Of a DNA stretch of 64,000 nucleotides, positions 1 through 63,000 are shown one piece after another; position 1 is the stretch's first letter; every line of letters begins with the position of its first letter. The stretch lies in assembly GCA_965603825.1 (NCBI GenBank), contig CBFDEM010000061.1, positions 234,073-298,072 of the forward strand, in the 5' to 3' direction. Origin of the DNA: Blepharisma stoltei ATCC 30299 (Eukaryota > Protista > Ciliophora). The notes under the pieces were generated by a model. That model did not search any database. It saw nothing but the letters and a program-made list of their open reading frames with translations, and was not told the origin of the DNA. The translations under genes were made by a program, and so were the position numbers.

Positions 1-3000
1 AATGCAGCTTGTGCATTCTCCATCAAATGTGGTGCATGAGTAGCATTCTTTATCCCTGCAAAGCACACATGCTAAATCGCTAACACATCCATGTACGCAG
101 CTTGTCAGGCATTGTTTGCAGCTGTCTGGATACTCATTTAATGCACAGTTACTTAAACATTGAAGACTTGAAGGGCAAGAAGCACAGCCAGTGTTGCATG
201 AAGAGGTTGCATAGTCATCTGTCTGATAAGTATAAGAGTTATATATCATTACTCTAGCTATAAACCCATAGTGTCCTGATGCTACATGATTTTCATCATT
301 TCCTATATAAAGAGTCCCTGAAATGGTATCTTTAAAATAAATTAAAGCAGAAGTGGTAATATAATTAATCAAGGTTGCGTTTATATAGAGGTTTAAAGTA
401 GTTTTGCCGTCAGTTTGAACTTGTCCTGTAAAGCTTAAAAAATTCCAATTATTAATAATACTTGAGGAGGCTGATAAAGTAGTTAATGACGAGTCTGAAA
501 AATATATAGAAAGCTGAGGGTATCCTGATGAGTCTATAATTACTTTTAAAATTTCTGATGAAGTATATTTAGTCATAAGAATCCCAGCTCCCAATGGCTT
601 AGCCCATATAGAAATTGAGAAAGATGGTGATATCATGACTGTAGAATGGATATAGTCGTTTAGGTGAAAATAATAGCCTCGCTTATAAGAAGGAATCGGG
701 TCATTTGTATCAGATCAATTAGGATAAACATTTGCGCTCACAGAGCCTATGCTAAAACTAGAAACAGTGTCAAGATGGACCTGATCTGTTAAATCAAGAC
801 TGATAGCTAAATTTGTTGAAAAATCGCAAGCATTTGTACCTGAGTTTGCAGTATACCCAGTTGGGCACTCACTTAAGCATTGTCCAGTTAAAGAAAAGAA
901 ATAAAATCCAGAAAAGCATGAGGTGCATTTTTGATAGGTTATATCAGTGCAATCTGAACATCCACTTGAGCATGCCAAGCATGAGAATCCATCTGATGAA
1001 ACTATATATCCAGAATTGCAGACACATGCATTAGGAGCTCCACTTGCATTAGTTACACATTGAGTGCATTTGCCTGAGCCAAATCCTGTGCAAATCGAGC
1101 ATAAAACATCATCACAAAGATTACATGTTCCTGATCTGACGCATCCTTTGCTGCAGGAATTGCAAGATAAGTAAGAAGATCCATCATAATAATTTGACAA
1201 ATCACAATTTCATAAGCAAGTGTCACAAAATGTAATCATATAACTGTAAAAATTATTAATAGGCACATTCCACAGCTGAAAATTATTAATAAACCCAACA
1301 AAGCCAGAAGAGCTGCTTTTCCCAATCATTAAGTTTGTTGAAGTGACGTCTCTATAAATATAATTTGAAATACTTAAGCTTTGATCCATTGAGCTAAAAT
1401 AGAAGTCTGTTATAGTTGTGGCATCAGAGGTGTATTCAAAAGTTATTGACAAATAGCTTCAGCCCCCTGAAGCCAATGTAGATGGTGCTGATAAAGCTTG
1501 AGTTGATAATGCTTGCGTAGGGTCTTCCATAACAGCTGTTATACTTCCAGTTGAAGATAAAATAAGCCTTGCTTCTTTTTCTAGTATATCACCATCAGTT
1601 ATTACATATATTCATAGCCCAATAGAAAAACTATGAGAAAGATAAACAGATATTGAGGATAATAAGTAGGTGGCCCCATTAAAATATAGACCTCTATCAT
1701 ATGCAGGAATAGGATCGACAGATTCAGGATTTGCAAAGGGCTGGTATGTGCTTGATGACGTTCCAGTGGTAAAAATTCCATAAGAACCTTGGAAATCAGT
1801 ATTCAGAGACTGATCAATCACTGGAGTTGAGACTAAAGTACAGGAAGCCCCATAGCCATATGGGCAGTCATTCAAACATATGCTCCCTACCAATTGTTTC
1901 CCTGAAATGCAAGTACTACACTCAAAATAAGTCGTTTGTGTGCATACAGAACAAAGTGCATCACATAAATCACAATTAGCTGTATTAGAGTTTCAAATAG
2001 CGCTTGTCATGCATTGGCAGCCTCCTGTTCCATCAGCTTCTGCATTAGTGATGCAGCTTGAGCAAGACCCAGAAAAAGAGGTGCACTCATAGCACTGCTC
2101 TGTTTTACATAATCTACAAGTGTTGCTATGTCTGCATCCCTTTGTACAAGTTCCCATACAATCTACACAGGCTGAACCATCGTAATATTGTGATAAAGGG
2201 CAGGTATCTGGACAATTATAATCACTAGGGCAACTCAAGCATGGAGAGGTACAACTTGATGTCGAATAGTCACTAAGTTTCAAAGTTTCTGAATTATAAA
2301 TATTTATATCATATAAAAAACCTGTGAAACCACTGTTTAAACTTGATTTTGTTCCAATATAAAGAGTTCCTAAACTGAGATCCTGAAAATAAACTTGGCT
2401 TACTGATGAGCCTGTATCTATTGGTATCGAATTAAAATATGAGCTTATTGTTGTTACATAGCCTGTATCGATTATTCCTGTAAATGCAATAAAGTTTCAG
2501 CCATTCAATACACTTGATGATAAAGCTACAGATAGTGCTGAGGAGTCGCTTAAAGTAATTGAAAGTTGAGGGTACTCAGAACTTAAAATTTCAAAGCAAA
2601 ATATTTCGCCCCCAGAAACAGTTTTAGAGACTATTGTGCCTGCAGAAGTTGGATAAATTCAAACAGAAATAGAAAAATATGGTCCAATCACTGTGTTGGT
2701 TGTGAGATAAGTAGTGCCAGTAAAATAGTATCCTCTTAAATAGGCTGGGTATGGATCGTTAGTATCATAATTCGGATAAGTGTTTGTATTAGAAGATCCA
2801 ACTGAAATTCCTGAAATTGAATCAAGCACTATTTTGTCATAAAAAATTATACTTAATCCAATATTTGAAGAAAAAACACAAGTTTTTGTATATGAGTTTT
2901 CGGTGTAACCTGTAGGACAGCTTGAAAGGCAAAAATTGCTATTATAAAAATAAGAGCTAGAGGTGCAGGAAGTGCATAAATAGTAAGATGAGCCAGTACA

Positions 3001-5055
3001 ATGAGCGCATCCCGCATAACAAGCTGAGCATAAAGCTTGATTTGCATCAGGCTGGTAAAATCCAGAATTACATGAGCATGGAGACCCAGAAGCATTAGAA
3101 ATACACGAAGTGCAAGCTCCTGACCAAAATGAGGAGCATTGAGCGCATAAAAAATCGTCACAAATATAGCAAGAGGTTCCTCTAGTACAGCCAATTGTGC
3201 AAGAGCCTAAGCATGGCTGACATACAGATCCATCATAATAGTGAGAATAGTCACACGGCCATAAAGTTGATAATGAACCTCCTGTCAGTGTATTTATGCT
3301 ATAAGAAGAAGAAAAATCGCTAATTTCAACTTGTCAAAGTATAAAATAAGCAATAAACCCGCTAAAATTTGTTGAACCTTTGCCAATATATAATACTCCT
3401 CCTGATGGCAATCTGAAAACATAATCTGTAACAGTTACTGCTGTTCCAGCTATATTATTAAGGTAAGGAATTACTGTAGTCACTTTATTGGAAAACCCGA
3501 TTGAATAAGAAATGTAGCTTCATACATTTGAAGTTATAGATTGTGAAGCTGAGTAGCTTGTAGACGTTCCATCCCACTTTTCTAAGTAAAAATTAATTCC
3601 GGTAGAACCAATATTAAGTTTATTTGAGCTATGACCTATAATTGTCCCAGAGTTAACTAGCACCCATAGGCTCATACTTCAAGTGTTAGAAAGATTTATA
3701 GACCCACTTAAATATTGGTTGGAATTGAAATAAAAACCTCTGCATTTTGCAGGGAATGGATCAGATGATTCTGGAGAATTCCAATAATTATAGCTTGAAG
3801 AACCTGTGGCAGTAGTCAAAGCTGTTCCATAGCTTCCTGCAAATGAGCCTGTAAAATCAGCAGTCAAAACGGCTGTAGAAACAGCTGTACAACTTCCGAA
3901 TCCATATGGGCATGCATATAGGCAAATTCCTCCAATTAAAACTTTTCCACTAATACATGCAGTATTTGTCCAGGTTTGGGTGCAAGTTGCACCAAAATAA
4001 TCACAGCATCCTGGAACTATTCCTGTAGTGCATGCTGTACACATTGATAAAGAGTATCCATAACAAGAACTGCAATCAGGAGAATAACAAATATCACAAC
4101 TTGAGCCTCTAACGCACCAAGGCCAAGTGGGACATCCCGAGCCACAGTTTTGGCAAGCAGACCCATCTCAATATTGATTATCAACACAATCAATAGTACT
4201 ACTCATTGTCCCATAATTTCGATTTGTATCAGATCTTGCCTGAAGTCAATAAATGAACCCTCTAAAAGAGTTTCCTCCGCTCAAATTCCCAAAAGTCCAC
4301 GTATACGTTGCTGTACCTGAAAATTTTGCTTCAGTGCTGCTTGAGGTTGTTGTTCCAACATTAGACCCATTTATATAAAAATTTATGGTTGCTTCAGAGC
4401 ATGAAGATTGATTTAGAATTATTGATGCTTGATGTCATGACGAGATATAGCTTGAAGTGCTAGCTCCAGATATAGAAATTGAGCCACTGCTTGTATTATA
4501 GACAATTGCACTAAACATATAAACACCAGAGGAATCTGTCCATATCCTTATATATGAGCTCGAGCTCAAAAGGACGTTTAAAATTTCTCCACTGTCTAAA
4601 GGCTTAATCCATAAATTTAATGTGAAATACAAAGCAGGAACATGACTTTGATTACTAGTGATACTTGAAGTCGTAGCGAAATAAAAGCCACGATCGACTG
4701 TTGGGAGAGGAGAATTTTGAGTTGCTGAATTATATGAAATTGATCCTGGATTTTCGAAGTGCTCAGAAGCAGATGTGGAACTTGCAATATATGTGGCAGT
4801 CAAATCTTGAATGTTTAAAAATTCTAGTGTGAATAAAATTGCATTGTTACTATTGGGCATGCTGCATGAATAGCCAAATCCATAATTTGCATTTGAGCCA
4901 AATAGTGAAGGGCATGAATTCACACATACTTTACTATCAGCTAGGTAGTATGAGTTTGAGCATTTGCATGTAAAATATAAATCGCTACTGTTAGATGGGC
5001 AGCAACAGTAGGTCAACAATATTTTGGTGAAAGAAACTAAAGCAAATATCATCAT
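1..5055 (-). CDS. G1: giant modular LamG-like/Cys-rich surface receptor, 3'-partial (at least 1685 aa, at least 5 modules), UGA=Trp
   Basis: Track ORFs 4435-5055, 3679-4044, 1993-2283, 1612-1893, 1210-1452 and 715-1200 share one frame and each ends in TGA where paralogs have Trp. Signal peptide MMIFALVSFTKILLTYC. RG[FLY]YF module motifs at ~4685, 3735, 2730, 1690 and 680. The frame runs off the window start. Confidence 0.88.
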
Positions 5056-6083: not shown

Positions 6084-9000
6084 TTATTTTTCGATTTTTT
6101 TATGGCTATCATTCAAAGGTTGAATACTATTTCTCATAATCCCTGCTTTGGTCAGCTTATGATGGATAACACCATACAGAGTTCTTGCAAAAATCGCGAT
6201 TGAAGAAAAAGATTGAATGATCATAACTCCTATCACAATAGCTACAATGGCGTTTTCAAATGTCGAGGTAATTTCTTGCTCTAAATTAAATAAATAAATT
6301 GATGTCGAGCTCATAACTAAGCAAATCATAATTTCAGTCAATAAATTGTTTATTTGCAAAACTGGGTCCTCAAAAGGCCAGAAAAAGATCAGATGCAAAA
6401 TAGTCATTAAGGAAAGAACAATATTTATGGTGACTTCAGTTTGCGGATATTCCCTCAAAAATACCAAATTTATTATATAGATGAATCTCCTTATAAAGAA
6501 CACGAAGTAATACTGTGTTGCAAGGAGGCCTCTATCAACTCTGAACTCATAAAAGAAGGAACTAAATAACTCTGTGAAGCTCTTTTCTCTTGACTGGATC
6601 CGATTTTTATTTTTATAAGAGAACCAGAAATATCCTGGTGGAGTTATAACTAGTAGTATATAAATTGCTAAGCATATAATAAAATTGATAATTTGTGTGA
6701 AATTGTTAAACCCAAAAGTAATTAGGCCAATACTAGCTGCAGCTCCTAGTTCAAGGTAGCACTGGATTCAAAATCTCAGATAAAATCCAAACTGATAAAC
6801 TTTTACTGTTTTCATAAACTTTTTACCAATTCACCTAAATGAGCATCGTGAAAAAAAGAAAACTACAGGCAGAGCAGTTAATGATGCAACTATTATTGTA
6901 AAATCATTGCCTTGCGTTATTAAAATCAAATCAGTATCAAACCCAAAATCTTGTGCTTGAGAATATGGAGCATTTCCTTCATTTTTATCAATTATATATA
7001 TAAAAATATTTGGAAATAAATTGAAGGAATTCAAATTATTCAAAAACGAGCTCATTTTGGATGACAGTGGAATTCCTGATAAAGTCAAGTAACTCAGAAT
7101 TTGTAAGCTGTTTATCATACTTCATAAAGAACTAGGGCTTGGATTTACAATTGATAAGGCAACAGCTCCAGAAATAGCAACTTGAACCCCAGCTGCTGCT
7201 TTAGAAGTAATTGCCTCAACTGCCGGAGAGTATGGAGCTGGATCATAAGAATTAAGTGATATAGAAATATCTGAAGAATTTAAAACGCCGTTTGATATTG
7301 ATTTTATGTCTGTTAAGTTTGAGAATTCTAAAGTAGTTAATGTGCCTTTAGATATTTCTTTAGATATAACTAGAGAAATATAATAGCAAGTGCTATTCAT
7401 CTCCTCAATTTTAAATGAAGCTTCTCCTTGTTTTTGAATTTTGATAGTAAAGTCATTTGCAGAGAGACTGTTAGCAAGGATATCTGAAAAAATAAGGTAA
7501 AGTGAATTATCTGAAAAAGCAGTCAACTTCGCTGAAAAGGGAACTAATATGCAGTTTTCAGCCCCATTGTAACCTAAATCACAATAGCATAGATCATTTT
7601 TAAGGCTGGCATTTTCTACACAAGAATTGCACTTTGTAGAGGATTCACAATAAGTGCAGAAGCTTGGACATGGATACAATTTCCCATCAGGACCTCTAAA
7701 TCCGCCTGCTTCCACAGGAATACAAGAATTGCTATTAGAAGTGTCAAGCACATAGTTTATATCACAAATACAAGAACTAGGATTGATAGCGTTTTCTATA
7801 CATTTAGAGCAGCCAGTAGATGAATAATCATTGCAAGAATCGCATAATAAATTATCGCAAAGAGAACAAGTAGACCTTCAGTCTCTGCAGGTTTCTTTGC
7901 ATTTTACGTTGCACTGATAGCATTTATTATAGGCTGGTCCAGCTCAATATTCATTTATTTTGCAATTCGGAATGCATTTTTGGTCTGTTGGGCACACACT
8001 GCAGCTTTCAGTACAAGAGGTCGTGGAAAGGCTTGACATAGACTTTAGTGAATTAAATATCTGTATACTATAAAGAAAGCCTTGATAAAAATTATAAGTT
8101 GATGATGAACTAAGCTGAGCGCCTATAGACATTATTGTGTGAGGACCTTTATCCTGGAAAATCCCATATATTGAGTTTCCGAGCGCGTCAGATAATCCAT
8201 TTATATAACAAGACAGTTTACTGTAACTGTTTTGAGTCAATTCTAATGTAAATACTACATGACTCCATTCGTAATTATTGAGAAGTCTATCAGCCATATA
8301 AAAAATTTGGAATGAGCTTAAGGTAAATGAAATCGAAATTTTGCTGCCCATCAATGAGATGGAGTAAAGCGTTGAATAACTATCAGAAATGTTATGCTTT
8401 GATAATAGAGTGCCATATGAAGTCTCAGTATTTAATCATATAGAAATCGTAAAGGTAGAGGGAATTATAAGTCTTGGTGATGCATAATTTGAATATTCTG
8501 GCATCCTTAAAATAGAAGATTTGCCGTTAAAATAAAATCCTCTTAAGTAAGCAGGTATAGGGTCATCAGGTTCATAATTTGGATAAAATTGGTTAGTTGA
8601 TCCAGTTATAACAGGAATTGAGTTTACCTTATCATAAATTACTCCATTCAGAGTATTCAGATCCAAGTCAAAAATTTTTTCTTGAACTAATACACAACTA
8701 CTTCCAGAAGGTGAATATCCTAACGGGCAGCTATTTACACAAATTCCTGATACATTATAAAATCCATTAGAGCACGTCAGACAGTCTAACGAAGTTGATG
8801 ATGCACAAGTTTTACAAGAAACATCACAAGAGCCACAGTTTTCATTGGTGCTATCCCAAAAGTATCCAGAATTGCATTGGCAACTTGCTCCGCTTAAGCT
8901 TGCATGCGTTTTGCAGGTAATGCATACACTTGTATAGTCATCACATACTTCACATAGCATATCTTGGCAGAGATTACAACTTTTATCAACTCTTGCACAG

Positions 9001-12000
9001 CCTTTAGCTAAGCATCCAGATGAGCATGTGACACAGCTGTTGCCATTTCAGTATTTATCTATATCACAACTATCCAAGCAAGTATTGGAATTATCTATTG
9101 GACATAGAGAGCACCCACTACAAGTGCTTGATGCTAAACTACTAACTGCTATTAGCGCATTATAAATTTTGAGATCTCAGAGAAATCCACTGAAAAATGA
9201 CGTTAAGATTGAAGAGCTAATATAGCCTGCTCCAATAGTCATCAAAAACGAAGCACCTAAATCACTTAGCCAGCTTGGGTCTAGATCGCTGGATGTATCG
9301 ATCATTCCATTTCTAGATAAACTAATAATTTGTTGTGGATTAGTACTTATGCCTGAGCTTGCTGATATGAAATTTCATTGAGAAAGGGCAGCTTCTAATG
9401 ATGGATTAGTACTTGTAAAAGTTTTTGTATTAGAATTTTTTAAAGTTAAAGTAAGTGAAGGGGCTTTGTTTATCAATTCCAAACTAATATGTTTTTTAAA
9501 AAGACCACTATCGGCTTGCTTGGAAAAGATTACTCCTGTATTTGAAATTGGCTTTATTCATGCTGACATAACAAATTTTGGCGAAAATGTGAGCAATGAT
9601 GAAGTGGTGCCTGCATAAGGAGGCAGCCTCATATAAGATGAACCAGAGAAATAATAACCTCTATAAATGGCTGCTATAGGATCAGTTGAATCATAATCAG
9701 GATAAAATTTGTTATCTTTGCCTGTTAATACCTGAATATTTGACTTCAAATCAGTGATGATGTCTTTTATTTGATGAGGCATCAAGTTAAATACAAAAGA
9801 ATTTGAATAATTCGGGTCTCTATCGCAGTTACCACCATTTATAATATACCCAGTAGGACAAAATGGCATGCAGAATGATTGTATTAGATAGTGGCTGGAA
9901 ATGCATGTGAGGCAGCCATTATAGTTTGGAGTTGAGCATGCAGAGCACATTGCATCGCAAAGTTCACAGCTCTCAGTATCTGAATCTCATACAGCATTTG
10001 CAACACATACACAATGATTACTTACTTTATGAGCGTTTGCAATACAACTTGTACATTCTCCTGTAAAAGTCGTGCATGATTGGCATTCTTTATCTCTGCA
10101 AAGTCTGCACGTTAAGTCACTAACGCATCCTTCGCTGCAGCCAGTCTTGCAAGTATTGCAGCTGTCTGGATACTCATTTACTGCACAGTCGCTTAAACAC
10201 TGGTGGTTTGAAGGGCAAGTAGAACAGCCAGATGTGCAAGAAGATGTTGCGTAGTCGTCAGATTTATAACTATGAGAGTTATATATCATTAATCTTCCTA
10301 AAAATCCATATAGTCCTGAAGTCCCAAAAGTTTCATCATTTCCAACATACAGCATTCCTGCATTAGTATCTTTAAAATAAGTGAAAGCTGTTGAAATGAT
10401 AGAACTTGGAGATGCTCCATTATCAATATAAAGTTTTAAAATTGATTTTCCATCATCTTGGATATTGCACGTAAAACTTAAAAAATGCCAGCTTAATGTA
10501 ATACTTGTGGAGGTAGTTAGAGTTTGGGTTGATGAGTCAGCAAACACAATTGAAAGCGCTGGAAATCCTGACGAGTTGATCTCAATTTTGAGAATCTCAG
10601 TAGTAGTAATATATTTAGTCATCAAAGTTCCATGATTTAGAGGTTTAGTTCATAGAGAAATAGTGAATGATGGAGCTATCATGACTGTAGAGGATAAATA
10701 ATCACTCATGTAAAAATAATACCCTCTTTTATAAGAAGGTATAGGATCATTCAAATCAGTTGATGTTAACCCACTATAAGTATTTGTATTAGAATTCCCT
10801 ACATTAAAGCCAGAAACGGTATCCAGCCTAACCTGGTCTGTTAAATCAAGACTAATCCCAAATTTTGACACAAAATCGCAAGTTTTTCCCCCTGTATTTT
10901 GTGTATATCCAGATGGGCACTCATCTAAGCACTGTCCAGTATTAGCAAAGAAATATCCAGAACTGCATGCTGTACATTTATTATAGGTCACAGCCAAGCA
11001 TAAAGAACACCCACTGAAGCAAGAAGCACATGATAAACCATCAGTGGATCTTCCAAACCCAGCATTGCATAGGCAAAGCCCTGACGATAAAGTTACACTG
11101 GGATCACATTGAGTGCATTTACTTGAATCAAATCCTGTGCAAGTTATGCATAATGAATCGTCACAAATATTACAAGTACTAGCTCGCCTGCATCCATAGG
11201 TACAGGAATTGCAAGCAGAGATAGCTCCATTTATATATGAAGAAATATCGCAGGCTCATAAACAAGATGCTCCCTGCCCTGATTCACAAAATGTAAAACT
11301 GCTGATAATTGCTGGAAATCCTGTAATTGCAGTATTTCATAGCTGAAAATAATAAATAAAGCCCACAAATCCAGGATTGTTGCTTTTGCCGAGTATTAGA
11401 GAGGTCAGTGCCTGGTCTCTGTAAATCATTTTTGTTAAACTGCTTGCTGAACTTGAAACTCCATTTATATAAATTGATAGGGCTGTGTTCCCTAGTGAAT
11501 ATTCAAAAGTGACTGATAGATAAGCCCACCCAGTAAATGACGAGCTAAGTGTTAATGCCTGAGAAGATGTTGCCTGAGCTGGATCTGTCATTGTAACAGC
11601 TATAGAGCCTGTAGAAGTCAGCGTTAAAAAAGTTTGTTTTTGCAATAAATCACCATTTGTAATTACATATAACCATACTCCGATTGAAAAACTATGAGAA
11701 AGATAAACAGTTGTTGAGGATAATAAATACATATTTCCATCAAAATATAAGCCTCGCTTATATGCAGGAATTGGGTCAACACTTTCAGGGCTGTTGGAAA
11801 ACTGAAAAGTCGCTGCACTTGTCCCTGTTGTAAAAATTCCATAAGACCCTTGAAAATCTTCATCAAAAGACTGATCAATCACTGTAGTCGTTACTACTGA
11901 GCAAGAAGTACTGTAAGGACACTCATCTAGACACACAGTTCCTGCTAGTTGATAGCCTCCTAGACAAGCTGAGCATTCAAAATATGCTGTTTTTAAGCAA

Positions 12001-15000: not shown

Positions 15001-15113
15001 CCATCCTGTATCTTTGAATGAAGACAGTAAGGAAGCCCAATTATATTTCCACCATCATAAGGACAAGCGAGAGTCAACAAAAATTTGGCGATAAAAATAA
15101 GAACAGTTTTCAT
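6084..15113 (-). CDS. G2: ~3009-aa receptor-like membrane protein (signal peptide, 7 LamG-like/Cys-rich modules, stalk, ~9-TM FLC/Pkd2-like domain)
   Basis: Twelve track ORFs from 14928-15113 to 6084-6503 share one frame. Internal breaks are TGA and the terminator is TAA at 6084-6086. Length 9030 nt is 3010 codons. Module motifs at ~14745, 13800, 12780, 11750, 10720, 9655 and 8535. Confidence 0.9.
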
Positions 15114-15243
15114 TATGTTTATAGATTATGTTAATTTGAAACATTTCAATTTATAAGGAAAGTTTAATTTATTTGCTTGCAAACAATCAATAAAAGCTTC
15201 TACTAGTTTACTATAAATCCCACTTAAGAGTATTTGCTAGTTG

Positions 15244-15316
15244 CCGGCAGAGATTTAGCATATGAAAGCTAAAATACACTATTGCCATATTCTGCCGGGT
15301 GTTGGAAAGCATCCAA
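15244..15316. other. Nested inverted repeats (possible structured RNA or DNA element) upstream of G2
   Basis: CCGGCAGA (15244-15251) / TCTGCCGG (15291-15298) encloses TTTAGC (15254-15259) / GCTAAA (15268-15273). It is followed by TTGGA (15302-15306) / TCCAA (15312-15316). Confidence 0.35.
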
Positions 15317-35511: not shown

Positions 35512-35627
35512 TATTATAGAATTGATTAAATTTTCAGCGTAATTTTATTAAGCAGAATATGAAGAAGTCTAATCTTTTTAATTTACAGGCATTACCAATT
35601 TGATTTTCAACTTGAATTAATTTAAGT

Positions 35628-47227: not shown

Positions 47228-47976
47228 TAATTATATATATTGAGAGAATTAAAAATATATTTTCATCAAATGCACCATTTTATGCAACAACCACGCAGGA
47301 ATATTCTAAATCATCTTTTATAAATATTTTAATTTTTCTAAAAAATTCATGCTTTTTGATCGAAAAACCTTTGAAAATTAGTTTTATAAACACAAAACAA
47401 TCAGCTTAATCGCGAAATCGCAGTTTCTAAACCGATTTTTCTTACATTATTGTTCAAGCATAGAATTTAGAGTTAAAGAGAAAAAAGATAAGCCCTAGAT
47501 CTTGTTTTATCTAAGAAGCGCATATAAGATAGGCCTATTTTTAAGAAATAAAATAAAATGCTAAACAGCGTTCAAATAAATAATCCGAATTAATAGCAAT
47601 ATCTAGCTTAATTAATTTCTTTATAATAATCTTAATGATATACGGGCTTTATATTAATATTATTTGAAAACAATAGAATTTTGGAGTTAATACATTTTTA
47701 AAAGATCAATGCTAATAAAATGATAGCATGAATTTTCCATTAGTCTAAACTAATTTTTGCATCATCAATATTGAAGGTTCACTATTGTTTCTTTCTGGGA
47801 TTAATAATTATGATGCTTTGGGAAATATTACAAATATTCCACATTTGCAGAGGTCAAATTCTAAAATAAAATCATTAAAAGAGAATTTTATGTTTATATA
47901 TAATATTTTAACTGATAAATATTATGTTTAATTGATTCTATTCGATGCTAGTTTTTCTTAATAGTTCGTTCTATAT

Positions 47977-50900: not shown

Positions 50901-52551
50901 ATGCTCCAGCTATGGGTCGAAAAATGCCTTCTTGAACTATATATGAATTTTCAGCAGAAGCATCTATATATGGAGTAATTGATGAAGATCCATCATCACG
51001 GTATTTTATTATATATGAAATATAATTCCAATTATTAAGAGATGGTGATGTTGAAGCGGAATACGCGGTATAATCACCCAAAAAATTTTGCATGCTAATT
51101 TCGATTGTTCCATCAGAATGCACTTTGAGATTTTCAGTATATGTTATATAATATCCACTGATGGGATAAATCCATGCTCCAATCGTGAATGTACGATAAA
51201 GATTTATTGTAGCTTTCAAATAAGAATTGGGAAGAAAATAAAGCCCTCTCTGCTTTGCAGGAAGTGGATCAATGCTTTCAGGGGAGTTTCAGTAGTTATA
51301 GGCAGATGAACTTTCTCCAGTAATCATAATATTATCGTAAATTCCTGCAAAGCTTTTAGTAAAATCAGCGTTAATAACAGGTGTATTTACCGGTGAATTA
51401 TTAATAAAACCATATGGTACAGCATACAAGCAAACTCCATCAATAAGAACTGTCCCTTCACTGCAGGAAGTACTATTGAATGTTGAAATACAAGTATTTG
51501 CAAGTCAATCACAACAATAAGGTAGCATTCCAGTTTTGCATCCTGTGCACATATTTTCAGCATATCCATAACACTCTGAACATTCCAATGAATAGCACCT
51601 AGAACAGTCGTCTTCGCCAGTCGAGCAAAGTCAATTTTGGCAGCCTGAATCATTATCACATTTCATACATTGGCCAAAATAGTTTAGAATGCTGCATAGA
51701 TTTGTTGTATCCAATATTCAATAATTTGAGTTCAAGCTATTTGTTGCTTCAATTCAATATAAAAATCCAAAAAAAGAATCTGAATCTGACTTTCCAATTG
51801 TCCACGTATAAGCCCCGTCAGCAAAATTTGCTATTGTACTGCCCCATTTTGAAGTTCACCTATCAATATTATTTCTAGATACCGTTATATTTACTACATC
51901 ACAATCTATTTGATTAATTTGGATTGATATATATTGCCAATTGCTATCAATGATATCACTGCTTACGCTTATTTGATTTTCAATGTTGATTGCACTTTTT
52001 GCTAAAATTTTAAAAGTAAAAATATCTGAATTATATATTAGTTCTATGTAATTTTTTGAGTCTAAATTTGCAGTCAATATCTGTCCAGTCGAAATAGGTA
52101 AAATTCATGCATTTGATGTAAAATAGAGTGCTGGAATGTAGTTCTGATTGCTAGTCATAGATGAAGTTGAGCTAAAATAAAACCCACGATTTCTTGTTGG
52201 AAATGGTGACGTTTTGGTGTCTAAGCTGTAAGGAGTTCCTAATGGATTAGCCCATTTATCAGTTGGATCGATCTTATTCGCTATATAAGTTGCTGATAGA
52301 TCCTCTATTTTTCAAAATTCAAGCTCGAATAATGCAGGGGAAGTTGGCATCGAACATCCTGTACATGAATCTTCTTGAACTGAGTCGCATACTTTTCTAA
52401 AGTGAGTTGGACAAACATTGGCACAAATTTTATTATCAATCAGCAAAGTATTAATCATATCATTGCATGCACCAGTATCCGTAAACGACTGGCACTGTGA
52501 AAAAGCTAGCAATATATTGGAGAAAAATAACAAAAGGAATTGCAATTTCAT
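47977..52551 (-). CDS. G7: ~1524-aa paralog, 3 modules plus ~9-TM domain
   Basis: Eight co-framed ORFs with TGA breaks and TAA at 47977-47979. Signal peptide MKLQFLLLFFSNILLAFSQC. Module motifs at ~52180, 51240 and 50240. Confidence 0.9.
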
Positions 52552-52651
52552 CTTTAAATTCTTAAATAATTATATTTCACTATCAAGAATATAAAAAGCT
52601 TAATAAGCAAGCATGTGTATTTATTTTGTTATAAAAATTTAGTAAATATAC

Positions 52652-55600
52652 TTAAATCGTTTCTGAAAACTCTTCAATAGGGTGAACTTTTAATTTAGAA
52701 TTTCCATATGGATTTAATTTACCACCAAAAAGTTGATAAATAGTTCTTGCAAAAATCGAGATTGAAGTGCAAAACTGTACCCCTATTACCATTATAGATG
52801 TGAAAATTATAAAGTTTTCCATATCTGATATCATGCTTGAGCTTAAATCAAATAAATAAAAAGAAGTTGCACACATAATTATTGAGATCATAATTTCACT
52901 AGCTAAATTCGAAATCTGAATAATTTTATCTTTATAAGGCCAATACGCAATTAAATAAAATATACTGATCAAGGAGCATATAATATTTATTGAAACTTGC
53001 GTCCTTGGGTAATCACTCAGGAACACCAAATTAGTCGAGTATATAAGTCTCCTCAAGAAGTAAACAAAATAGTAAAGAGAATAGAGAAATCCTTTTTCAG
53101 TCCGAAATTCATAAAAAAAGGAGTCAAATAGTGAAAAGAATGTTTTAGACTTTGATTGAATTTTTACTCGATTTCTATAAGAAAACCAAAAAAATGCAAA
53201 AGGGGAAGCTGTATATAATGAAATAATCCCAAAGCAAATAATAATATTTGTTATTTGAGTAAAATTTTGGATTTTGAACATTTTTAGCCCTACATATGCA
53301 GCAGTTCCAAGCTCAAGGAAGCATTGTATCCAGAATCTTATATAGAAAGCATATTTATAATTTTGGTACATTTTTTGAAATTTTTTTCCAACCATTCTGT
53401 AAGAACAATTAGCTAAATATAATACTAATGGAATAAAAAGTACTGAGGCAGCTGCTATAGAAAAATCATCACCTTGGTTTAATAAGATTAAATCAGTATT
53501 GTATCCAAAATTTATAGCATTATCATAAGCTTTGCTTCCCTCTTTTTCATTTATTAAATATTCAAAAACATTTGGAAAAAGGCTAAATGAATTTAAATTT
53601 GATAAGAATTTATTCATTTTTTCTGAAAAAGGAATTCCTGATAATGATAAATAACTGAGAATTTGTAAGCAGCTTAAAAAGCTTCATAGTGAGCTTGGAT
53701 TTGGATTTACAAATGATGCAGCTATAGATCCAATAACTGCACCTTGCACAGCTGAAGATATTTGTGAAGTAATTTCAGTCATAGCTAAGCTATAAGAAGC
53801 TGGGTCATATTTATTAAGCCTAGAGCTAATTGTTGAGGAGCTCAAAATCCCATTATAAATTGACTTTACTTTTGTCAAATCAAAAAATGTGATATTTATT
53901 ATTGTATATTCTTCTATTTTTTCATTAAATATTGTTTGAATACTGTAGTAGGTTGTATTTACCAGTTCAAGGCTTCAGCTAAATTTTGGATCATTCTCAA
54001 TAGAAATTTTAAAACTGTCATTTGAAAGTGCATATTGCAAAGGATCTGAGAAATCAAGAGATAAAGAATCATTAGAAAAAATTAAGAGATCGACAGAAAA
54101 TGGGACATATTTGCACGCTGTGGTTCCATTGTAGCCACTATTACACGCACAAGAATTATTTTGAACTGAAGCATTTGGTTTGCATGCTTTACATCCATTT
54201 GATGAACTATTGCAAGTATCACATAAAAGATCTGTGCAAAAAGAACAAGAATTACCTAATCGATTTTCAACACACAAAAAGCAAGATTTAGAGTCAAATG
54301 ATGAGCATTTCAAGCAGAGCTCGCTATCACAAATATTGCATGAGTCTGCTCTCACGCAGCCATTTTGGCATGAATCTAAACATTTTTTGAAAGAACTTCC
54401 ATCATAGAAGGAATTAAAATCACAACTTCACAAATCCAATGCTCCTGCATTATTATTGAAATAACCTCGATAAGACTGAAAACTTGAAATAGCGATTTGT
54501 CACAACTGAAAAAGACTTATAAATCCATTAAAATCAGCTGATCCAAGATAAAGAGATCCGCCTGCTTCAGGTCTGAAAATCCCTTCTTGCACAAAATATG
54601 GATTTGTAATGTCAGTTTCTATATATGGAGATATTGATGAAGTTCCATTAAAACGGTATTCAATTGAATAGGAAATATAGTTTCATTTTTGAAGATTTGA
54701 CGATATTGAAGTGGAATACGTTTTGCTACTTCCAGCAAAATTTGGCATGCAGATCTCAATTGTCCCGTTAGAATGCACTTTCAGCTGATTCCCAGTATAT
54801 GTTATATAATATCCACTGATGGGATAAACCCATGCTCCAATCGTGAATGTATGATAAAGATTTATTGTAGCTTTCAAATAAGAATTGGGGATAAAATAAA
54901 GCCCTCTCTGTTTTGCAGGTAATGGATCAATGCTTTCAGGGGAGTTTCAGTAGTTATAGGTAGATGAACTTTCTCCAGTAACCAATATGCTATCGTAAAT
55001 TCCTGCAAAGCTATTAGTAAAATCAGCATTAATAACAGGAGTATTTACTGGCAAATTATTAACAAAGCCATATGGGATTGCATACAAGCAAACTTCATTA
55101 ATGAGAACTGTACCTATACTGCAGGTAATACTATTAAAAGTTGAAGAGCAAGAACTTGCTAATCAGTCACAACAAGATGGCTCCTTTCCACTTGTACATT
55201 TTGAGCACATATTTTGAGAGTATCCATAACACTTTGGGCATTGGTCTGAGTAGCACTTAGTGCAGTCATCCTCGCCAGGCATGCATAGTGAGGATGGAGG
55301 ATCGCAGTGTCCTGATTCATCACATACTATACAATTGTTATCATAAAGTATATGAATAATTAAATTAAGTTCTATATCATCGACTTTAATTCTTAATAGG
55401 CTAAAACCTTTCCCCACACAAATTAATGCACTTATATTTTATTTTACTCTTCACTCATCAAAATTATTGCAAGGTAGTCTAATATTGCATAATTGTGAAA
55501 AATCTGGGGATCAATGATAGTGATATAAAACATTTCATCCTTTAATTCAATATAAAAATCCATTGAAAGAAGTTTCATCTGATTTTCCGATTGTCCAATT

Positions 55601-56341
55601 ATATACTTTATTCGGAAACCTTGCTTCATAGCCATGCTCAAAAAGGTTTGGAATACTACCCGGATCTTCATTTATTGCAATAACCAATTTAATTGTATCA
55701 GAATCTATTTGATTAATTTGAATTAACACATATTGCCAAACACTATCAGCTATAGAGGTAATTTTTGGCATATCGCTATCACGATGTGGCGTTTTTGCCA
55801 GTATATTGAAAGCAAAGTAGTGATCATCAAGCACTAATTCTATATAGTTTGTTGATTCAGCCCTTACAGTCAAAATCTTTCCAGGGGTTATTGCTGTAAT
55901 CCATAGAGCTGCTGTGAAATAAAGAGATGGGATATAGGGTTGGTTGCTGGCGATTGATGAACTTGAAGTAAAATAAAATCCACGGCTCCTAGTAGGTAAT
56001 GGAGATGTATTCGTTGGAGAATTGTAAGGAACTAAAAATGGATTTTCTCAATTATCAGCAGAGTTGATTGAGCTCGTTATAGAAGTTTGAGATAGATTTT
56101 GGATCATCCAAAATTTAAGCTCAAATAGCTCAGCATTGGAGCTCGGTAAATTGCACAATTGTCCTTTATCTCGGTCTACATCTTGGATAAATTGTGAAGG
56201 ACATACTTCGCCACAAATTTTATCATCAATTCAGTAATCATTAGTCCCATCATTGCACATTACATCGGCACCTACCCCTGAATATAGCACAAAAGTCAAC
56301 AATATATTGTTGACAAAAAACAAAAAGTTAAGAAAATCCAT
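52652..56341 (-). CDS. G8: 2-module paralog plus ~9-TM domain (~1185 aa if the 132-bp insertion at 55352-55483 is removed; otherwise truncated by an in-frame TAA at 55439-55441)
   Basis: ATG 56341 (MDFLNFLFFVNNILLTFV, missed by the track because of an early TGA) is in frame with ORFs 55547-55873, 55163-55417, 54683-54877, 53975-54355, 53684-53878 and 52652-53617. The one non-TGA stop found lies inside the insertion. Confidence 0.82.
55351..55484. mobile_element. Candidate retained internal eliminated sequence (IES), 132 bp, TA-bounded within an ATAT direct repeat
   Basis: ATAT at 55350-55353 and at 55482-55485. Excision gives TGC AAT ATA CTT TAT GAT = LCNILYDNNC, matching G7 LCSILNYFGQC. The insert is AT-rich, has no counterpart in the paralogs and contains an in-frame TAA. 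Confidence 0.7.
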
Positions 56342-57132: not shown

Positions 57133-60100
57133 TTAAGCAATCTTTTTTATAATTCCTGATTTTTTAAGTTTATAGTAAATCACTTGATATAAATACCTTG
57201 AAAATATTGCTACTGATGATACAAATTGGACAATTATTGCCAAAAAGACACTTAGAATAATAGCATTCTCTACCCCTGTCACAATATCTTGCTCTAAATT
57301 AAATAAATATACAGACGTTGCACACATTACAATTAAAACAAGTATTTCTGTCAATAAATTGTTGATTTGTAATATAAGGTCTTCAAATGGTCAATAGAAA
57401 ATTAAATGAAGGACTGTTACTAAAGAAAGAACAATATTAATGGTGACTTCTGATTCTGGATAATTTCTCAAGAAAACCAAGCTTACAATATAAATAAATC
57501 TCCTTGAAAAAAATACAAAATAAAATTGTGTTCCGAGCAAGCCTTTGTCGCTTCGAAATTCGTAATAAAAAGTGCTAAATAAGGCAAATAAAGATTTTTC
57601 ACGTGATTGAATACGATTTTTATTTTTGTAAGAAAACAAATAATAGAGAGGTGGGGTGAAAACCAATAGTAAAAACACAAATGTGCATAAAATAATATTT
57701 ATGCATTGAGTAAAATTATGATTACTGAATGTGGAAATTCCTATACTAGCTGCTGCTCCTAATTCAAGATAGCATTGTATTCAAAACCTTAGATAAAAAG
57801 AGTATTTATAAGCTCTCATTGATTTTTTAAATTTTTTACCGAGCCACCTATATGAGCATCTAGAAAATAGAAAAACTGCAGGAAATGCAAATATGGAGGC
57901 CAGAATAAGTGTAAAATCATCTCCTTGATTTAATAGGATCAGATCAGTATCAAATCCAAAGCTTTTCGCTTGAGAATATGGAATTGTCCCTTCCTTTTCT
58001 TTTATAAAATAAGAAAAAGCATTTGGAAATAGACTAAACGAATTCAGATCATTTAAAAATGCACTCATTTTACTAGAGATCGGAATACCAGACAAAGTTA
58101 AGTAGCTGAGAATCTGCAAGGTATTCATCATGCTCCACAAAGAGCTTGGACTTAGACTCATAATTGATAAGGCAGCTGCTGTTGAAACAATTGCTAGAGT
58201 TCCAGTTGTCGTTTGAGATCTAATTCCTTCTATAGTTGATGAATAAGGTGCTGGATCATAATAATTAAGAGAAACTGAAATTTCAGACGTGTTTAAAATT
58301 CCATTCGAAACGGATCTTAACTCAGCCAAGTTCAAAAATTCAAGAGTAGCTGATGTACCTTTAGGGATTATTTCTTCTAAATCTAATGTAATATAATAGC
58401 TTGTATCATTCACCTGCTCAATTTTTCATGAAACATCATACTTTTTAATTGTTATGATAAAGTCAGAGGCTGTGAGATTATTTGCTAGAGTATCAGAAAA
58501 AGATAGATATAAAGAATTGTCGCTTAAAACTGTAAGCTTTGCTCAAAAAGAAACTAAAGTGCAATTGCTTATACCGTTATAGCCAATATTACAATAGCAT
58601 AAGTCATTATATAGGCTTGCATTATCTACGCAAGCTGTACATTTAATTTGAGATTCACACGAAATACATAAGTTTGGACATGAATAAAACTTTCCATCAG
58701 GACCTTTGTATCCACCAGATTGAATTTGTACGCAAGTGCTATTAGTAGAACCATCCAATACAAAATTTGTATCGCATATACATGAATCAGGGTTGATTGC
58801 ATTTATTTTACAAGTTTCACACCCTGTTTCTGAGTAATTTGTACAAATTTCACATAATAAATTATCACATAGAGAGCAAGTTGATCTTCAATTCCTACAG
58901 CTTTTCTTACACTTTATATTACACTGATAGCATGAATTATAGCTTGGGCCGCTCCAATACTCATTTATTTTGCAATTAGGAATACATATTTGATTTGTAG
59001 GACAAACCCCACAGCTTTCAGTGCAGGCTGTAGTTGATAATTTTGATATAGGCTTGACTCCATTAAATATTTGAATTATATAAATAAATCCTTGGTGAAA
59101 ATTATATAATGAATCTGATGAGATTTGAGCTCCAATTGTCATTGCAGTGTTAGAGCTTCTATCTTGAAAATATCCATAATTGACTATCGCAGATGAATCA
59201 AAATTACCTTTTATATAGCAAGAAGCCATGCTATTCCCATCTGTAGTTATTTCTAAAGTAAATGACACGTGATTTCATTCATTATTTTTAAGTGCAGTCT
59301 GACATGTATAAGCAATTGCAGATGAGCTAATAATGATAGATAGCGCTGGCTTACTATTCATTAAATATACCGCTCATAGTGTTGATAAATTATTGGAGAT
59401 GTCATTTTTTGAAATAATTGTAGAGAATGAAGTTTCAGTATTTAATCATATAGAAATTGTAAAAATAGGTGCAATTACAAGCTTTGGAGATATATAGCTT
59501 GAGTATTCAGGTAGTCTTAAAATTGAAGATCAGCCATTAAAGTAAAATCCTCTTAAATAGGCTGGGATGGGGTCATCATTTTCATAATTCGGGTAGAATT
59601 GTTTAGTTGAGCCGGTTATAACTGGAATTGAGTTTGCTTTATCATAAATTACTCCTTCTAATGTGTTTAAGTCTAAGTCAAAAATCTTTTCTTGAGTCTG
59701 CACGCATTTAGTTCCTGATCGAGAATATCCTTGTGGACAACTCGCCAAACAAATTCCTGAAACCAGATATAATCCATTAGCACAAGCTAAGCAATCTAAA
59801 TATTTCGATGATGTGCAGGATTTGCAAGAAGCATCGCACGCATCACAGCTTTCATTATCAATATTCCAGTAAAAACCAACATTGCACTGGCAGCTTGAGC
59901 CAATTAAACTTGCATTTGATTTGCAGGTAATGCATGTGCTTGTATAATCATCACATAGTTCGCAAACAACATCTTGGCAATGATTGCAGCTCTTGTCCTT
60001 TCTTACGCAGCCAGAGTTTGAGCATCCTGATAAGCAAGAAGCACAACTATTACCATTTCAAAAACTTCCTATCAGACAATTATCTAAGCAAATATTGGAA

Positions 60101-63000
60101 TTGTCATTAGGACATAATGAGCATCCATTGCAAGATCCTTCAGTCAAGATTGGGATAGCTAATGTGTTATATATTTTCATATCTCATAGAAAACCATTGA
60201 AAAATGAGCTAAAATGTGTTGAGTCAAGGTGACGTGCTCCAATCGATATAAAAAATGAGCTTTCTAAGTCTTCCAATCAGCTATCACCTAAATCGCTTGA
60301 AATATCGCTAAAAGAGTTCATTGTAAAGCTAATTGTTTGCTCGGGAGTAGAACTTATTCCAGAAGTAGCAGAAATAAATACTCACTGTGCAAGAGTAACT
60401 TGCAATGATGCATTAGTGCCTATATAAGTAACAGTTGAGGAATCTTTGAGAGTTAAAGTGAGTGATGGGTATTTATTAATTAGTTCAAAACTTACATATT
60501 TAGTAAATGCTCCATTATCAGTTTGCTTGCAAAAAATAACCCCTGTTCCAGATATTGGCTTTATTCAGGTTGCAATTGCAAATTGAGGAGAAAAAGTAAG
60601 TAAAGGAGATGGAGTGCTTAAATAAGGAGGAAGCTGCATATAAGAAGTTCCAGTGAAATAATAACCTCTATATATAGCTGCATAAGGGTCAGTTATTCCA
60701 TAGTTTGGGTAAAATGTATTATCTTTTCCGGTAAGAACAGGGATATTATTTTGTAAATCATTTACAATGTTTTTTATTTGATGTGGCTTTAAATTAAAAA
60801 CGAAGCCACTATAGTTCATATCTATCTCGCAAATATTATTATTCAAAATATATCCAGTTGGACAAAAGAGAGAGCATATATTTTGAAGCATAAAGTAGCC
60901 AGATATGCAAGAGGTGCATTGCGTATAAAATCCTCCACTACAATCTACGCACAAATTATAGCACTGGGAGCATAAAGCTTGCCCAGAAGGTTGAAAAAAC
61001 CCACTATCACAATCGCATGTGCTGTTTGATGCATGCGGTATACACAAAGTGCAAGAATTAGATGAAAATGATGAGCATTTCTGGCATTTATCAGTTTCAC
61101 AGATATTGCATGAATTTGCTCTTACGCATCCATTTTGACAAGATATCAAGCATTGCTCGCAAGATGCCCCATCAAAATAATAATCATAATCGCAATTTCA
61201 TAAACACTCAACATCTGTTCCTATATTGCAATTATAATAATTTAGAGCATTTGTGAAATCAGTTATAGTGACCCCTCATAGTTGAAAATAACTTATAAAA
61301 CCATTAAAATCTCCTGTTCCAAGATATAAATAGCCTCCAGAAAATGGTCTAAAAATATGATCGCTTGTAGAACTGGCTGCAGCATGAGCATTATTTAGAT
61401 ATGGAGTAACTGTAGACACTCCATTTGAAAATCCAAAAGAATAAGAAATATAACTTCATTGCCATAAAGGTGTTGCCATAGAAGATGTTAACAGCTGGAT
61501 TGATCCATCATATTTTTGCATATAAGTCTGAAAAAAACCATTTGAATTCAGTAGAAAATTGCTATAGCTATGCCCTATTCAGCTTCCACTAATTAAGTAA
61601 ACTCATGCGCCAAAACTTAAAGTAGGTGATAGATCAATTTGCCCTTTTAGATAAGTGAACCCAATAAAATAAAGTCCTCTCCATTTTGCTGGAAATGGAT
61701 CGAAGATTTCTGGAGAATTTCAAAAATTATAGCTTAAAGGATCAGATCCAGTAACAAAAACGTTATCATAAATTCCTGCAAAATCATCAGTAAAATCTAT
61801 CGTAATTACAGGAGTAGATACAGGAGAGCAATTTCCAAAGCCATAAGGACATCCATATAGGCAAATCCCGTTAATAGGACTTATACCATTAGTGCATGAA
61901 GTGCTTTGCCAAGTAGAAGTGCAAGCACTGGCTAGCATATCACAACAATATGGCAAAGATCCTGTGGTGCATGATGTGCACATAGATGCAGAATATCCGG
62001 TGCAAGATCCACAACTTACCGTATTGCAAGTGCTGCAGCTGTCACCTCTTATACATCAAGGCCAGCTAGGACAAGCTGAACTACAATTTTGACAAGAAGT
62101 TCCATCCCAATACTGCTTATTTTTGCATTCTAATTTAGCTGTCATTGTAGCATAATTAATAGTTAAATCGTTTCTCGCTTCCATCCAATATAAAAACCCT
62201 TTAAAAGAATCTGGAGCATCTCCTCCAACTAGCTTTCCAATTTTTCATATATTTTTATCAGTTTGGTCTACTGGAAAATTTGCTTCATAATTATAAAAAG
62301 TAGTCACAACTGGGTTTGAGTTTATATATATTTTTAAATTTACTTGATTGCAAGATGCTTGCTCAAGCTGAAATGACACTGTTTGTCAAGCAGAAGTATA
62401 TGGATCGCTATAAGCTGTTACTTTAGTCTCGCCAGAATCGTTAGAGTTTTGCAAAATCACTTTTAGAACAAAAGTAGTTGCCTCTGCTACGCATTCAATA
62501 TAATATCCAGAATTATAATAAAAGGTTAAAATTTGACCCGAACTTAAAGGGTGAATCCATATATTTGCTGTAAAATAAAGTGCTGCAATATATCCTGGAG
62601 TACGTGATAGAGATGAAGCTGAATCGAAATAAAAGCCACGATCTACGGTAGGAAGAGGGGCATTTTTTGAACTAGAACCAAAAAGGGTTCCTCCAGGTGT
62701 ATTGAAATGCTGTCCAGGACTAATCAAATTTGAGATATAAGTTGCAGTCAAATCCTGAGCTGCTGAAAAATCAAGTTGGAATAGAATTGGAGAAGTTGGT
62801 AGGCTGCATGCCGTGCAAACAGTAGTTCCTGTTGTTGTACAGACTGGAGTGAATTTAGAAGGACAAATTTCTGCACAGACCTTCCCATCTATCATTAAGC
62901 TATAATTAGCATCAACACACGAGCCAGAAATACTATTTTTAGGGCATGCGGAATAGGTAAACAATAAAAAGGAGACGAAATTAAGCACTAATAATTTCAT
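57133..63000 (-). CDS. G9: ~1955-aa paralog, 4 modules plus ~9-TM domain (telomere-proximal)
   Basis: Nine co-framed ORFs with TGA breaks and TAA at 57133-57135. Signal peptide MKLLVLNFVSFLLFTYSAC. Module motifs at ~62635, 61675, 60660 and 59540. Confidence 0.9.

Follow-up and report, generated by a model that had tools for sequence, protein, structure and literature searches.

The window, the 64,000 nucleotides analysed here, is the end of the macronuclear contig C61 of Blepharisma stoltei, and it closes in a telomere (63212..64000, plus strand) composed of (TGTTAGGG)n, the CCCTAACA repeat of Blepharisma. When UGA was read as tryptophan, nine long open reading frames were found, all on the minus strand. 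TGA columns align with TGG, and the genes are opened by UGA read-through alone; the bacterial, standard, UAR=Gln and UGA=Cys codes were rejected, and with the bacterial code the longest ORF in the window was at most 506 codons. A tRNA gene search found none. The nine genes are the end of a tandem family of roughly 33 genes that occupies about three quarters of C61, and the whole contig includes about 150 typed modules. C61:200,001-234,072 and the other contigs of the genome were covered via match coordinates and database proteins only. Proteins containing TGA were searched as stop-free pieces or as database proteins, and one interrupted gene (G8) was read with X at the stop. Word-index protein searches with TGA-free pieces gave almost no matches and one large profile search was therefore used to find relatives.

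The predicted proteins contain a signal peptide, a series of repeats, an Ig-like stalk, a nine-helix Flc/Pkd2-type domain and a short cytoplasmic tail. Each repeat, or module, is made up of a LamG/ConA jelly-roll domain of ~200 aa and an EGF/furin-like Cys-rich linker of ~140 aa. Modules were located using the conserved RG[FLY][YFL][FL] motif and a LamG profile, and there are 42 in the window (5+7+6+3+3+9+3+2+4 for G1 to G9). The modules have a ConA-like jelly-roll fold, with Pfam Laminin_G_3 (PF13385) detected in seven stretches of G6 (E 1e-45) and both jelly-roll lectins and LNS domains matched in the fold search; the structure model of a module was poor (pLDDT 47). Foldseek matches to neurotoxin binding-domain chains (13-16% identity) reflect the generic lectin jelly-roll and no toxin. 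The LamG fold is no proof of sugar binding, since many LNS domains have protein ligands. The N-terminal domains of relatives include malectin (E 2e-31, in P0014 of B. stoltei), PA14/GLEYA and, weakly, H-lectin.

A common anchor ends G2 to G9. In G6 (36356..37732, minus strand) it consists of an Ig-like beta-sandwich stalk of about 97 aa and about nine membrane helices, modelled as long helices with a pLDDT of 93. The best Atlas match was a fungal PF06011+PF14558 cluster (98% PF06011), with a TM of 0.72 over 405 residues in a comparison of two predicted models. PF06011 was not matched in the protein pieces of the window or C61, and was found in 9 of 72 relatives, weak in sequence (best E 3e-7). 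No Pfam match to the PF14558 ML-like domain was found before the anchor, and the fold of the stalk was closest to SbsC, LdtMt2 and macroglobulin domains. Neither Pfam nor the fold search detected a GAIN/GPS region before helix 1. Matches to 7TM folds (best Z 8-9.5, rmsd 4-5 A, about 180-200 residues) were under the helical-bundle noise level, and no TRP channel was among the matches listed in solved-structure searches of the anchor.

The genes, all on the minus strand, can be described relative to a nine-module master string, N-B1-A1-B2a-A2-B2b-A3-P-Z. G1 (1..5055) is N-B1-A1-B2b-A3, without the B2a-A2 of the master, and crosses the left window edge, beyond which match coordinates place P, Z and the anchor. 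G2 (6084..15113, 3009 aa) is N-B1-A2-B2-A3-P-Z-anchor, its B1>A2 junction lying in the later part of the linker. G3 (16461..24305, 2614 aa) is N-B1-A2-B2b-A3-Z-anchor and has chimeric linkers near 22250 (B1>A2) and near 19120 (A3>Z, where P alone was lost). G4 (24720..29483, 1587 aa), G5 (30916..35511, 1531 aa) and G7 (47977..52551, 1524 aa) are all N-B1-Z-anchor. Six modules are skipped in G4; the last linker is about 55 aa shorter in G5, for which a database protein has the identical length and start, and in G7 has lost about 60 aa between two C-x-x-N-A motifs. G6 (36290..47227, 3645 aa) is N-B-A-B-A-B-A-B-Z-anchor. In G8 (52652..56341), which is N-B1-anchor, Z has been lost and a chimeric linker lies near 54240, while G9 (57133..63000, 1955 aa) is N-B1-P-Z-anchor with five modules skipped and a chimeric B1>P linker near 60870. 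The strings proposed in a sequence-only reading of the window (G1 NBABA..., G2 NBABAPZ, G3 NBABAZ, G4/G5/G7 NBZ, G6 NBABABABZ, G8 NB and G9 NBPZ) match these exactly.

The same reading had proposed distinct module types, a proposal that grouping of the modules by gene would contradict. A tree of the 42 modules, built without type labels, recovered the five groups N, B, A, P and Z with SH-aLRT support of 99, 99, 88, 100 and 98, respectively. Only four label changes by type were needed, which is the minimum (shuffled mean 23.2, with none of 200 shuffles that low), against 33 by gene (shuffled mean 29), so the modules group by type and the contradicting pattern was not seen. The type clades recurred in trees of 151 modules and of 119 modules, the latter including other ciliates, and the five types are old, being common to Blepharisma and Stentor.

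When modules were shuffled within genes the observed order had a P of about 10^-14, a figure that makes the order look more surprising than it is, since the grammar was derived post hoc and the genes are related by descent. With G6 set aside, 26 of the 27 multi-module anchored genes read in the C61 region are ordered subsets or fragments of the master, the sole exception being g70k, which has gained A2-B2b. Descent of the C61 genes from a long master accounts for the conserved order, though the master could instead be a late chimera and not the ancestor; the direction of each event, loss or gain, was assigned by parsimony. The claim that module order is never violated held for the rank N < B/A < P < Z, which is not reversed on C61 or in the strings of the cross-species tree. 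The full grammar is specific to the window, as genes starting N-A are found on C61 and N-A-P-P-P-P-Z on another contig. Family members contain 2-13 modules. A dispersed Stentor gene and a syntenic relative are both N-B-A-A-Z, and variation therefore follows the tandem array. No A-A or B-B neighbours were found on C61. An obligate A/B heterodimer was nevertheless rejected, as only 6 of the 36 possible skips would give A-A or B-B, the chance of seeing neither with roughly 13 events is about 0.1, and A-A runs occur in Stentor.

The idea that whole modules are gained or lost in frame by recombination in the Cys-rich linkers is supported by the junctions. Linkers at non-master junctions are chimeric, with the left part of the upstream type and the right part of the downstream type. 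The switch points fall at linker positions of about 40, 70, 77, 83, 92, 100, 105, 120, 125, 130, 137 and 152, and so represent many events. Most junctions preserve the reading frame and the number of cysteines. In one close pair (g142k and g128k, 85-90% DNA identity) that differs by A3-P, the junction is at a shared TGC-N6-AATGCAA stretch encoding C-x-x-N-A. The flanks of the junctions have diverged by 10-35% from master-like genes, indicating that the events are old. These features suggest that Cys-rich linkers of one paralog or of different paralogs, in one case on different contigs, mis-pair and undergo unequal crossover or deletion, which would remove, and occasionally add, in-frame blocks.

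The A-B dimer had also been described as a ~2-kb expanding unit. The size was confirmed, with a spacing of about 345+338 aa, or about 2.05 kb, but expansion was not. Among the A/B modules, 66 share their gene with another of the same type, and all 66 are closer to a module of another gene than to any such sibling; recent in-gene tandem duplication of A-B was therefore rejected. Most variants are deletions from the master, in units of 1, 2, 3, 4, 5 and 6 modules. Loss of an A-B pair is the commonest, but single B, P or Z modules, A-P pairs (A3-P repeatedly) and blocks of 3-6 modules have also been lost, and the g70k gain is the only clear A-B gain on C61. Identity is 0.53-0.60 between same-phase linkers, 0.42-0.43 between B1 and B2 linkers and 0.26-0.40 between others. 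The greater likeness of same-phase linkers would explain why A-B steps of two modules are the most frequent.

It is extremely improbable that the junctions are assembly artefacts or somatic rearrangements made in macronuclear development. The Blepharisma genome paper reports lower coverage and uncertainty in such clusters (PMC9942806). However, protein identity among the modules of one gene is only 30-60%, too low for mis-joining, the junction flanks are diverged as described above, and at G8, the only gene where reads were checked, the junction was found in independent runs including a diverged one.

In-place expansion was rejected for G6, which is chimeric with a gene on another contig. The 5′ part of G6 (39172..47293, minus strand) gave a single DNA match, 76% identical, to C29:7699-15847, which is probably the locus of the 13-module protein P0013 (CAG9321670). 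The junction (39130..39172, minus strand) is in the B>Z linker, and downstream of it are a remnant of a P-type linker and the C61-type Z and anchor. G8 is interrupted in strain ATCC 30299 by an in-frame TAA (55441-55439) carried in a TA-bounded, IES-like insertion of 129 bp (55351..55479, minus strand). No 15/16-nt intron fitted the stop. Enumeration of direct-repeat excisions was ambiguous alone and the boundaries of the insertion were set by reads. Contigs of three DNA runs span the G8 junction, one of them probably germline-containing and one diverged; contigs of runs guessed to be RNA are shallow and may be DNA. The insertion is missing from the contig of the diverged run, which is probably another strain. 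In that run the N module of G8 differs by about 6-15%, with a 68-nt stretch replaced, and the anchor by 2.5%.

All parts of the proteins are under purifying selection (dN/dS 0.27-0.45), and positive selection was not seen on average in any module type, no domain class having an average dN/dS above 1. The exposed A2 tips of two close pairs gave values of 0.73 and 1.27. N is the most divergent type (46%, against 62-70% for P, Z and the anchor). These values bear on the possibility that the locus reflects mostly neutral decay, with recombination-prone segmental expansion and many short forms eroding without a separate role. Deletions outnumber gains, some copies are frameshifted or truncated, some genes retain N as a degenerate remnant, and the supplement of the genome paper takes many of the short members of orthogroups to be eroding pseudogenes (PMC9942806). 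Against this, the open frames of the short forms are still 4.5-6 kb long, dN/dS is 0.2-0.5 between G7 and G8 and, in the A-B-Z clade, about 0.3 for most regions, and 24 of the 37 listed G7 codons that differ between strains are silent, making decay as the main explanation very doubtful.

The interpretation we favour, and consider rather probable, is an array of old, typed lectin-fold modules, derived from a long master by linker recombination and encoding glycan-binding receptors or adhesins. Malectin or PA14 tips in relatives favour this. The products would be located in the plasma membrane and act in contact with prey, substrate or cells, differing tips and module sets could provide a recognition repertoire, and module number would drift by birth and death. 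Alternatively, module number could act as the molecular ruler suggested in the sequence-only reading, selected for reach above the glycocalyx, with pull gating a Pkd2-like, calcium-permeable domain. The regular 340-aa period, the 2-13 modules per gene, the frames and cysteine counts mostly kept at junctions, and the resemblance of the anchor to Schizosaccharomyces pombe Pkd2, a nine-helix protein (10.1101/2022.08.11.503631) that conducts calcium when the membrane is stretched (PMC9727806), are in keeping with such a tethered mechanosensor. We consider it unlikely, as a spacer has no need of five lectin-fold types kept since the Stentor split, length changes in irregular steps (odd numbers, deletions of less than a module, added furin units and non-homologous fillers), several copies are broken (G8, g80k, g137k, g164k and g183k), the PF06011 link is weak in sequence, and the dispersed Stentor gene and the syntenic relative share one architecture. 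A combined version, quite unlikely, is a repertoire of stretch-activated Flc/Pkd2-type calcium channels on typed-lectin tethers, the tip setting the ligand and module number the reach; if true, a single cell would have a combinatorial system of touch-and-taste receptors.

A variant surface coat similar to the immobilisation antigens, with one paralog expressed at a time and diversity generated by recombination, would fit the Cys-rich tandem paralogs adjoining a telomere, their divergent tips and the greater difference of the diverged run in the N module of G8 than in its anchor. To our knowledge, ciliate immobilisation antigens are GPI-anchored and have no LamG or multipass domains. The C-terminus of G2 to G9 is multipass, and a coat of this kind is decidedly unlikely. 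In Blepharisma, telomere addition occurs at many alternative sites (PMC9942806), and the same genes sit on a 393,583-bp contig in a database record, so a subtelomeric position carries little weight.

Change of repeat number by unequal recombination is already familiar in surface proteins. In the fungal adhesins FLO, EPA and ALS it alters the length of a repeat stalk that bears a lectin tip; their repeats are near-identical within a gene and their anchor is GPI. Relatives of the window family share the PA14/GLEYA tips, but the repeats are old, typed, folded and lectin-like, paralogs exchange them and the anchor is multipass. The LNS arrays of neurexin and laminin also have LamG domains spaced by EGF-like units, and adhesion GPCRs and polycystin-1 carry a giant ectodomain on a multipass domain of seven or eleven helices, whereas the anchor here has about nine and lacks GAIN/GPS. 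Fungal Flc1-3 and S. pombe Pkd2 (PF06011 TRP with PF14558) similarly place a beta-sandwich on a nine-helix membrane domain. They differ from the window proteins, which have a modular ectodomain of 1,000-3,200 aa, a short tail and a large multigene family, and an Ig-like stalk with no Pfam match to the ML-like lipid domain in whose place it sits. DGF-1 of Trypanosoma cruzi and bodonin of Bodo (PMC9967923) are likewise giant surface proteins encoded in many copies, with EGF-like signatures at regular intervals and 8-9 helices at the C-terminus, but are without the LamG repeat grammar and belong to a different lineage and way of life; the DGF-1_C cluster scored 0.89 by language-model features, which is no more than a lead.

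On C61 the shuffling of domains in a free-living protist has left a clean natural record, and the ~150 typed modules of the contig, with mappable in-frame junctions, bear on whether homology alone or selection determines which architectures survive. Judged by architecture and species, the family is almost certainly OG0000019, listed without function in the portion of the supplement of Singh et al. 2023 (PMC9942806) that describes it; beyond this supplement nothing was found in the literature on a ciliate LamG surface family. As set out there, members have a C-terminal multipass domain, a central Laminin_G_3 series and in some cases an N-terminal malectin, and form large gene clusters at contig ends. 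The module types, their order, the recombination junctions and the Flc/Pkd2 link go beyond that account as far as it describes the orthogroup, and tie one large unexplained cluster of Blepharisma membrane proteins to lectin tips and to the Flc/Pkd2 fold, itself poorly understood. The same portion of the supplement counts seven helices in OG0000019 and the anchor model obtained here has about nine.

Nine minus-strand genes (G1–G9, numbered left to right) occupy 89% of the window outside the telomere. Each has a signal-peptide-like start followed by repeats of about 340 aa in which a LamG-like core is joined to a Cys-rich linker, and a membrane anchor is common to the C-termini of G2–G9; G1 exits the window. 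A tree of the 42 modules in the window, built unlabelled, contained five groups (N, B, A, P and Z); labelling by type needed 4 changes on it, labelling by gene 33. The distinct module types proposed in the sequence-only reading were thus recovered, clustering by gene was not found and all nine module strings agreed with those first read. All trees were quick searches with SH-aLRT as the only branch support. Only 100 bp (window 52552–52651) lie between the stop of G8 and the start codon of G7, and the remaining intergenic gaps are 0.4–1.4 kb.

The window and a further 200 kb of the contig (C61) were read as DNA; C61 positions 200 001–234 072 (34 kb) and the other contigs were covered through match coordinates and database proteins. 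The family takes up about 77% of the C61 DNA read, and about 33 family genes were found on C61, including match coordinates in the 34 kb segment. In a tree of 151 modules the five types were kept and the positional subtypes B1, B2a, B2b, A1, A2 and A3 were resolved. One gene, g58k, carries the complete set, N-B1-A1-B2a-A2-B2b-A3-P-Z, and all remaining C61 genes read are ordered subsets of this master string, except G6 and g70k, a gain with the string N-A2-B2b-A2-B2b-Z. The skipped segments are A-B or B-A pairs (G1, G2, G3, g118k, g35k, g97k clade), the A3-P pair (g15k, g107k clade, g70k/g112k), P alone (G3), Z alone (G8), B1 alone (protein P0176) and blocks of three (g112k), four (g7k), five (G9) or six modules (G4, G5, G7). 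N-A starts were also found, and in seven genes a degenerate N remnant, or no recognisable N, stands ahead of A2. The grammar originally put forward, N-B-(A-B)n-[A]-[P]-[Z], therefore holds for its fixed rank order but not for a strict N-B-(A-B)n, which, given the N-A starts and the range of skipped blocks, is a special case of a looser rule. Under this rule rank order is constant and any internal block can be deleted. In the A2-B2b gene clade (L008–L018, C61 79–182 kb) the tip is a degenerate, partly deleted N remnant, and some copies (g80k, g137k) are frameshifted. An inversion breakpoint lies near 163.5–168 kb of C61.

Linkers at the skipped positions are chimeric: the left part resembles the linker native to the upstream module, and the right part the one that natively leads into the downstream module. 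Their switch points (approximate) fall at a dozen distinct places. This bears out the earlier proposal that whole modules change in frame by recombination in the Cys-rich linkers. The clearest junction is g142k versus g128k, where the DNA to either side of an A3-P deletion is 85–90% identical and the two ends of the deletion have in common a short stretch coding C-x-x-N-A; the same motif flanks a sub-module deletion in the last linker of G7. Out-of-register junctions in g70k and g112k leave an extra furin-like unit, and N>A2 junctions contain a short non-homologous filler, with the frame kept in both. Two-module steps are the commonest, which is sufficiently explained by same-phase linkers being most alike (identity 0.53–0.60 versus 0.26–0.43 for others). 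The A-B dimer had been taken as the expanding unit, but blocks of one to six modules are skipped and none of 66 A/B modules had its closest match among the siblings within the same gene, which argues that the repeats are old and that present variation reflects deletion and inter-paralog exchange. Unequal recombination between linkers would delete blocks and exchange them among paralogs.

The strongest case of exchange is G6. Its first 2700 residues are collinear with the 13-module protein P0013 (about 50–88% identity per 100 residues, with a poorer match in the first 200) and match contig C29 of the same genome (76% over 8.1 kb), while its Z module and anchor match G9 and further C61 genes. 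Near the start of C29, adjoining the gene matching G6, is an N module (G000:C29:3876-4609) with 73% DNA identity to that of G9, which points to repeated exchange between the two contig ends.

Contigs of three DNA runs cover the G8 junction, among them a run that has diverged by a few percent and a run that apparently contains germline insertions; the junction is thus not an assembly error, nor obviously somatic. No module-number alleles were seen in this read check, which was limited to the G8 junction. G8 also contains a TA-bounded 129 bp insertion (window 55351–55479) with an in-frame TAA. The assembly and the X5 and X7 runs have this insertion; in the diverged run X12 one contig lacks it cleanly, and the spacing there again matches G7. 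It resembles an IES that is strain-specific or was left unexcised; in the public annotation G8 begins downstream of it (876 aa). X7 contigs have additional DNA at window ~52047, 55340 and 55630 (~800 bp at the last), probably germline IESs within G7 and G8.

A profile search with the anchor recovered 1379 relatives. Other B. stoltei strings include N-A-P-Z, N-A-B-A-B-Z, N-B-(A-B)4-A-P-Z, malectin-(B-A)3-P-Z and N-A-P-P-P-P-Z. Stentor coeruleus SteCoe_8686 is N-B-A-A-Z, and metagenomic eukaryote proteins, probably from ciliates, are N-B-A-A-A-Z and N-A-A-A-A-Z, their inner A-like modules being loosely typed. In a joint cross-species tree (a quick tree with long branches) modules of the N, B, P and Z types cluster with their own type. 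The Stentor gene has no close LamG-annotated neighbours and the same architecture as its syntenic relative, suggesting that variability is tied to tandem clustering. Relatives carry N-terminal malectin, PA14/GLEYA or H-lectin domains; four from metagenomes (P0031, P0052, P0122, P0022) have TIG with PA14/GLEYA or H-lectin, followed by a P-like module and then this anchor.

The modules have the ConA/LamG jelly-roll fold (Pfam E 1e-45), with matches to pentraxin, LNS and lectin domains, and the linkers are EGF/furin-like (weak Pfam matches; cysteine pattern). Every part of the proteins is under purifying selection (dN/dS 0.27–0.45); N is the most divergent module type and P and Z are among the least. 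The anchor is modelled (pLDDT 93) as an Ig-like stalk and about nine helices, and the top structural match of this model was a fungal Flc/Pkd2 cluster (TM 0.72), with weak PF06011 matches in 9 of 72 relatives. Calcium passes through S. pombe Pkd2 upon stretch (PMC9727806), and nine helices are predicted for that protein (10.1101/2022.08.11.503631); the family is at most a distant relative with the Flc/Pkd2 fold. Membership of the canonical TRP channels was rejected, as no solved TRP channel was among the matches listed for the anchor in structure searches, as was membership of the adhesion GPCRs, no GAIN domain being found in the anchor, and of the immobilisation antigens.

We consider it reasonably likely that this is a lectin adhesin or receptor family, variable in length and tip, shaped by birth, death and unequal recombination. 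The outer part may bind glycans, the best indirect sign being the malectin, PA14/GLEYA and H-lectin tips of relatives. That module number instead sets ectodomain reach, as a ruler, seems improbable given the irregular step sizes, the broken copies, the conservation of five distinct folded types over a long time and the unvarying module order and number in the dispersed Stentor-type gene. In the genome paper's supplement, orthogroup OG0000019 has the domain content, clusters and eroding copies of this lectin-like family, and the account of that orthogroup there gives neither module types nor function (PMC9942806). New here are the nine-module master with its subtypes, the junction map, the inter-contig chimera G6, the persistence of module types across species and the read check of the G8 junction.

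The anchors of intact C61 copies contain no TAG, and in most anchor copies on C2, C6, C12, C24, C29, C40, C48 and C63 an in-frame TAG occurs once or twice. These probably mark 15-nt introns, which the C61 clade has apparently lost from its anchors. TGA read-through is needed to open the long ORFs, and TGA columns align with TGG. Protein searches with TGA-containing sequences used pieces free of stops or the corresponding database records. The window is the right end of the 298 kb C61 in an assembly of 41.46 Mb and 64 contigs; this end is made of (TGTTAGGG)n and the opposite end carries the identical repeat. These features match the macronuclear genome of B. stoltei ATCC 30299, which has 41 Mb in 64 contigs, CCCTAACA telomeres and UGA read as Trp (PMC9942806). 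A protein database record places the same genes on a 393 583 bp contig, longer than C61 (298 072 bp), so the telomere at the right end may be an alternative addition site.
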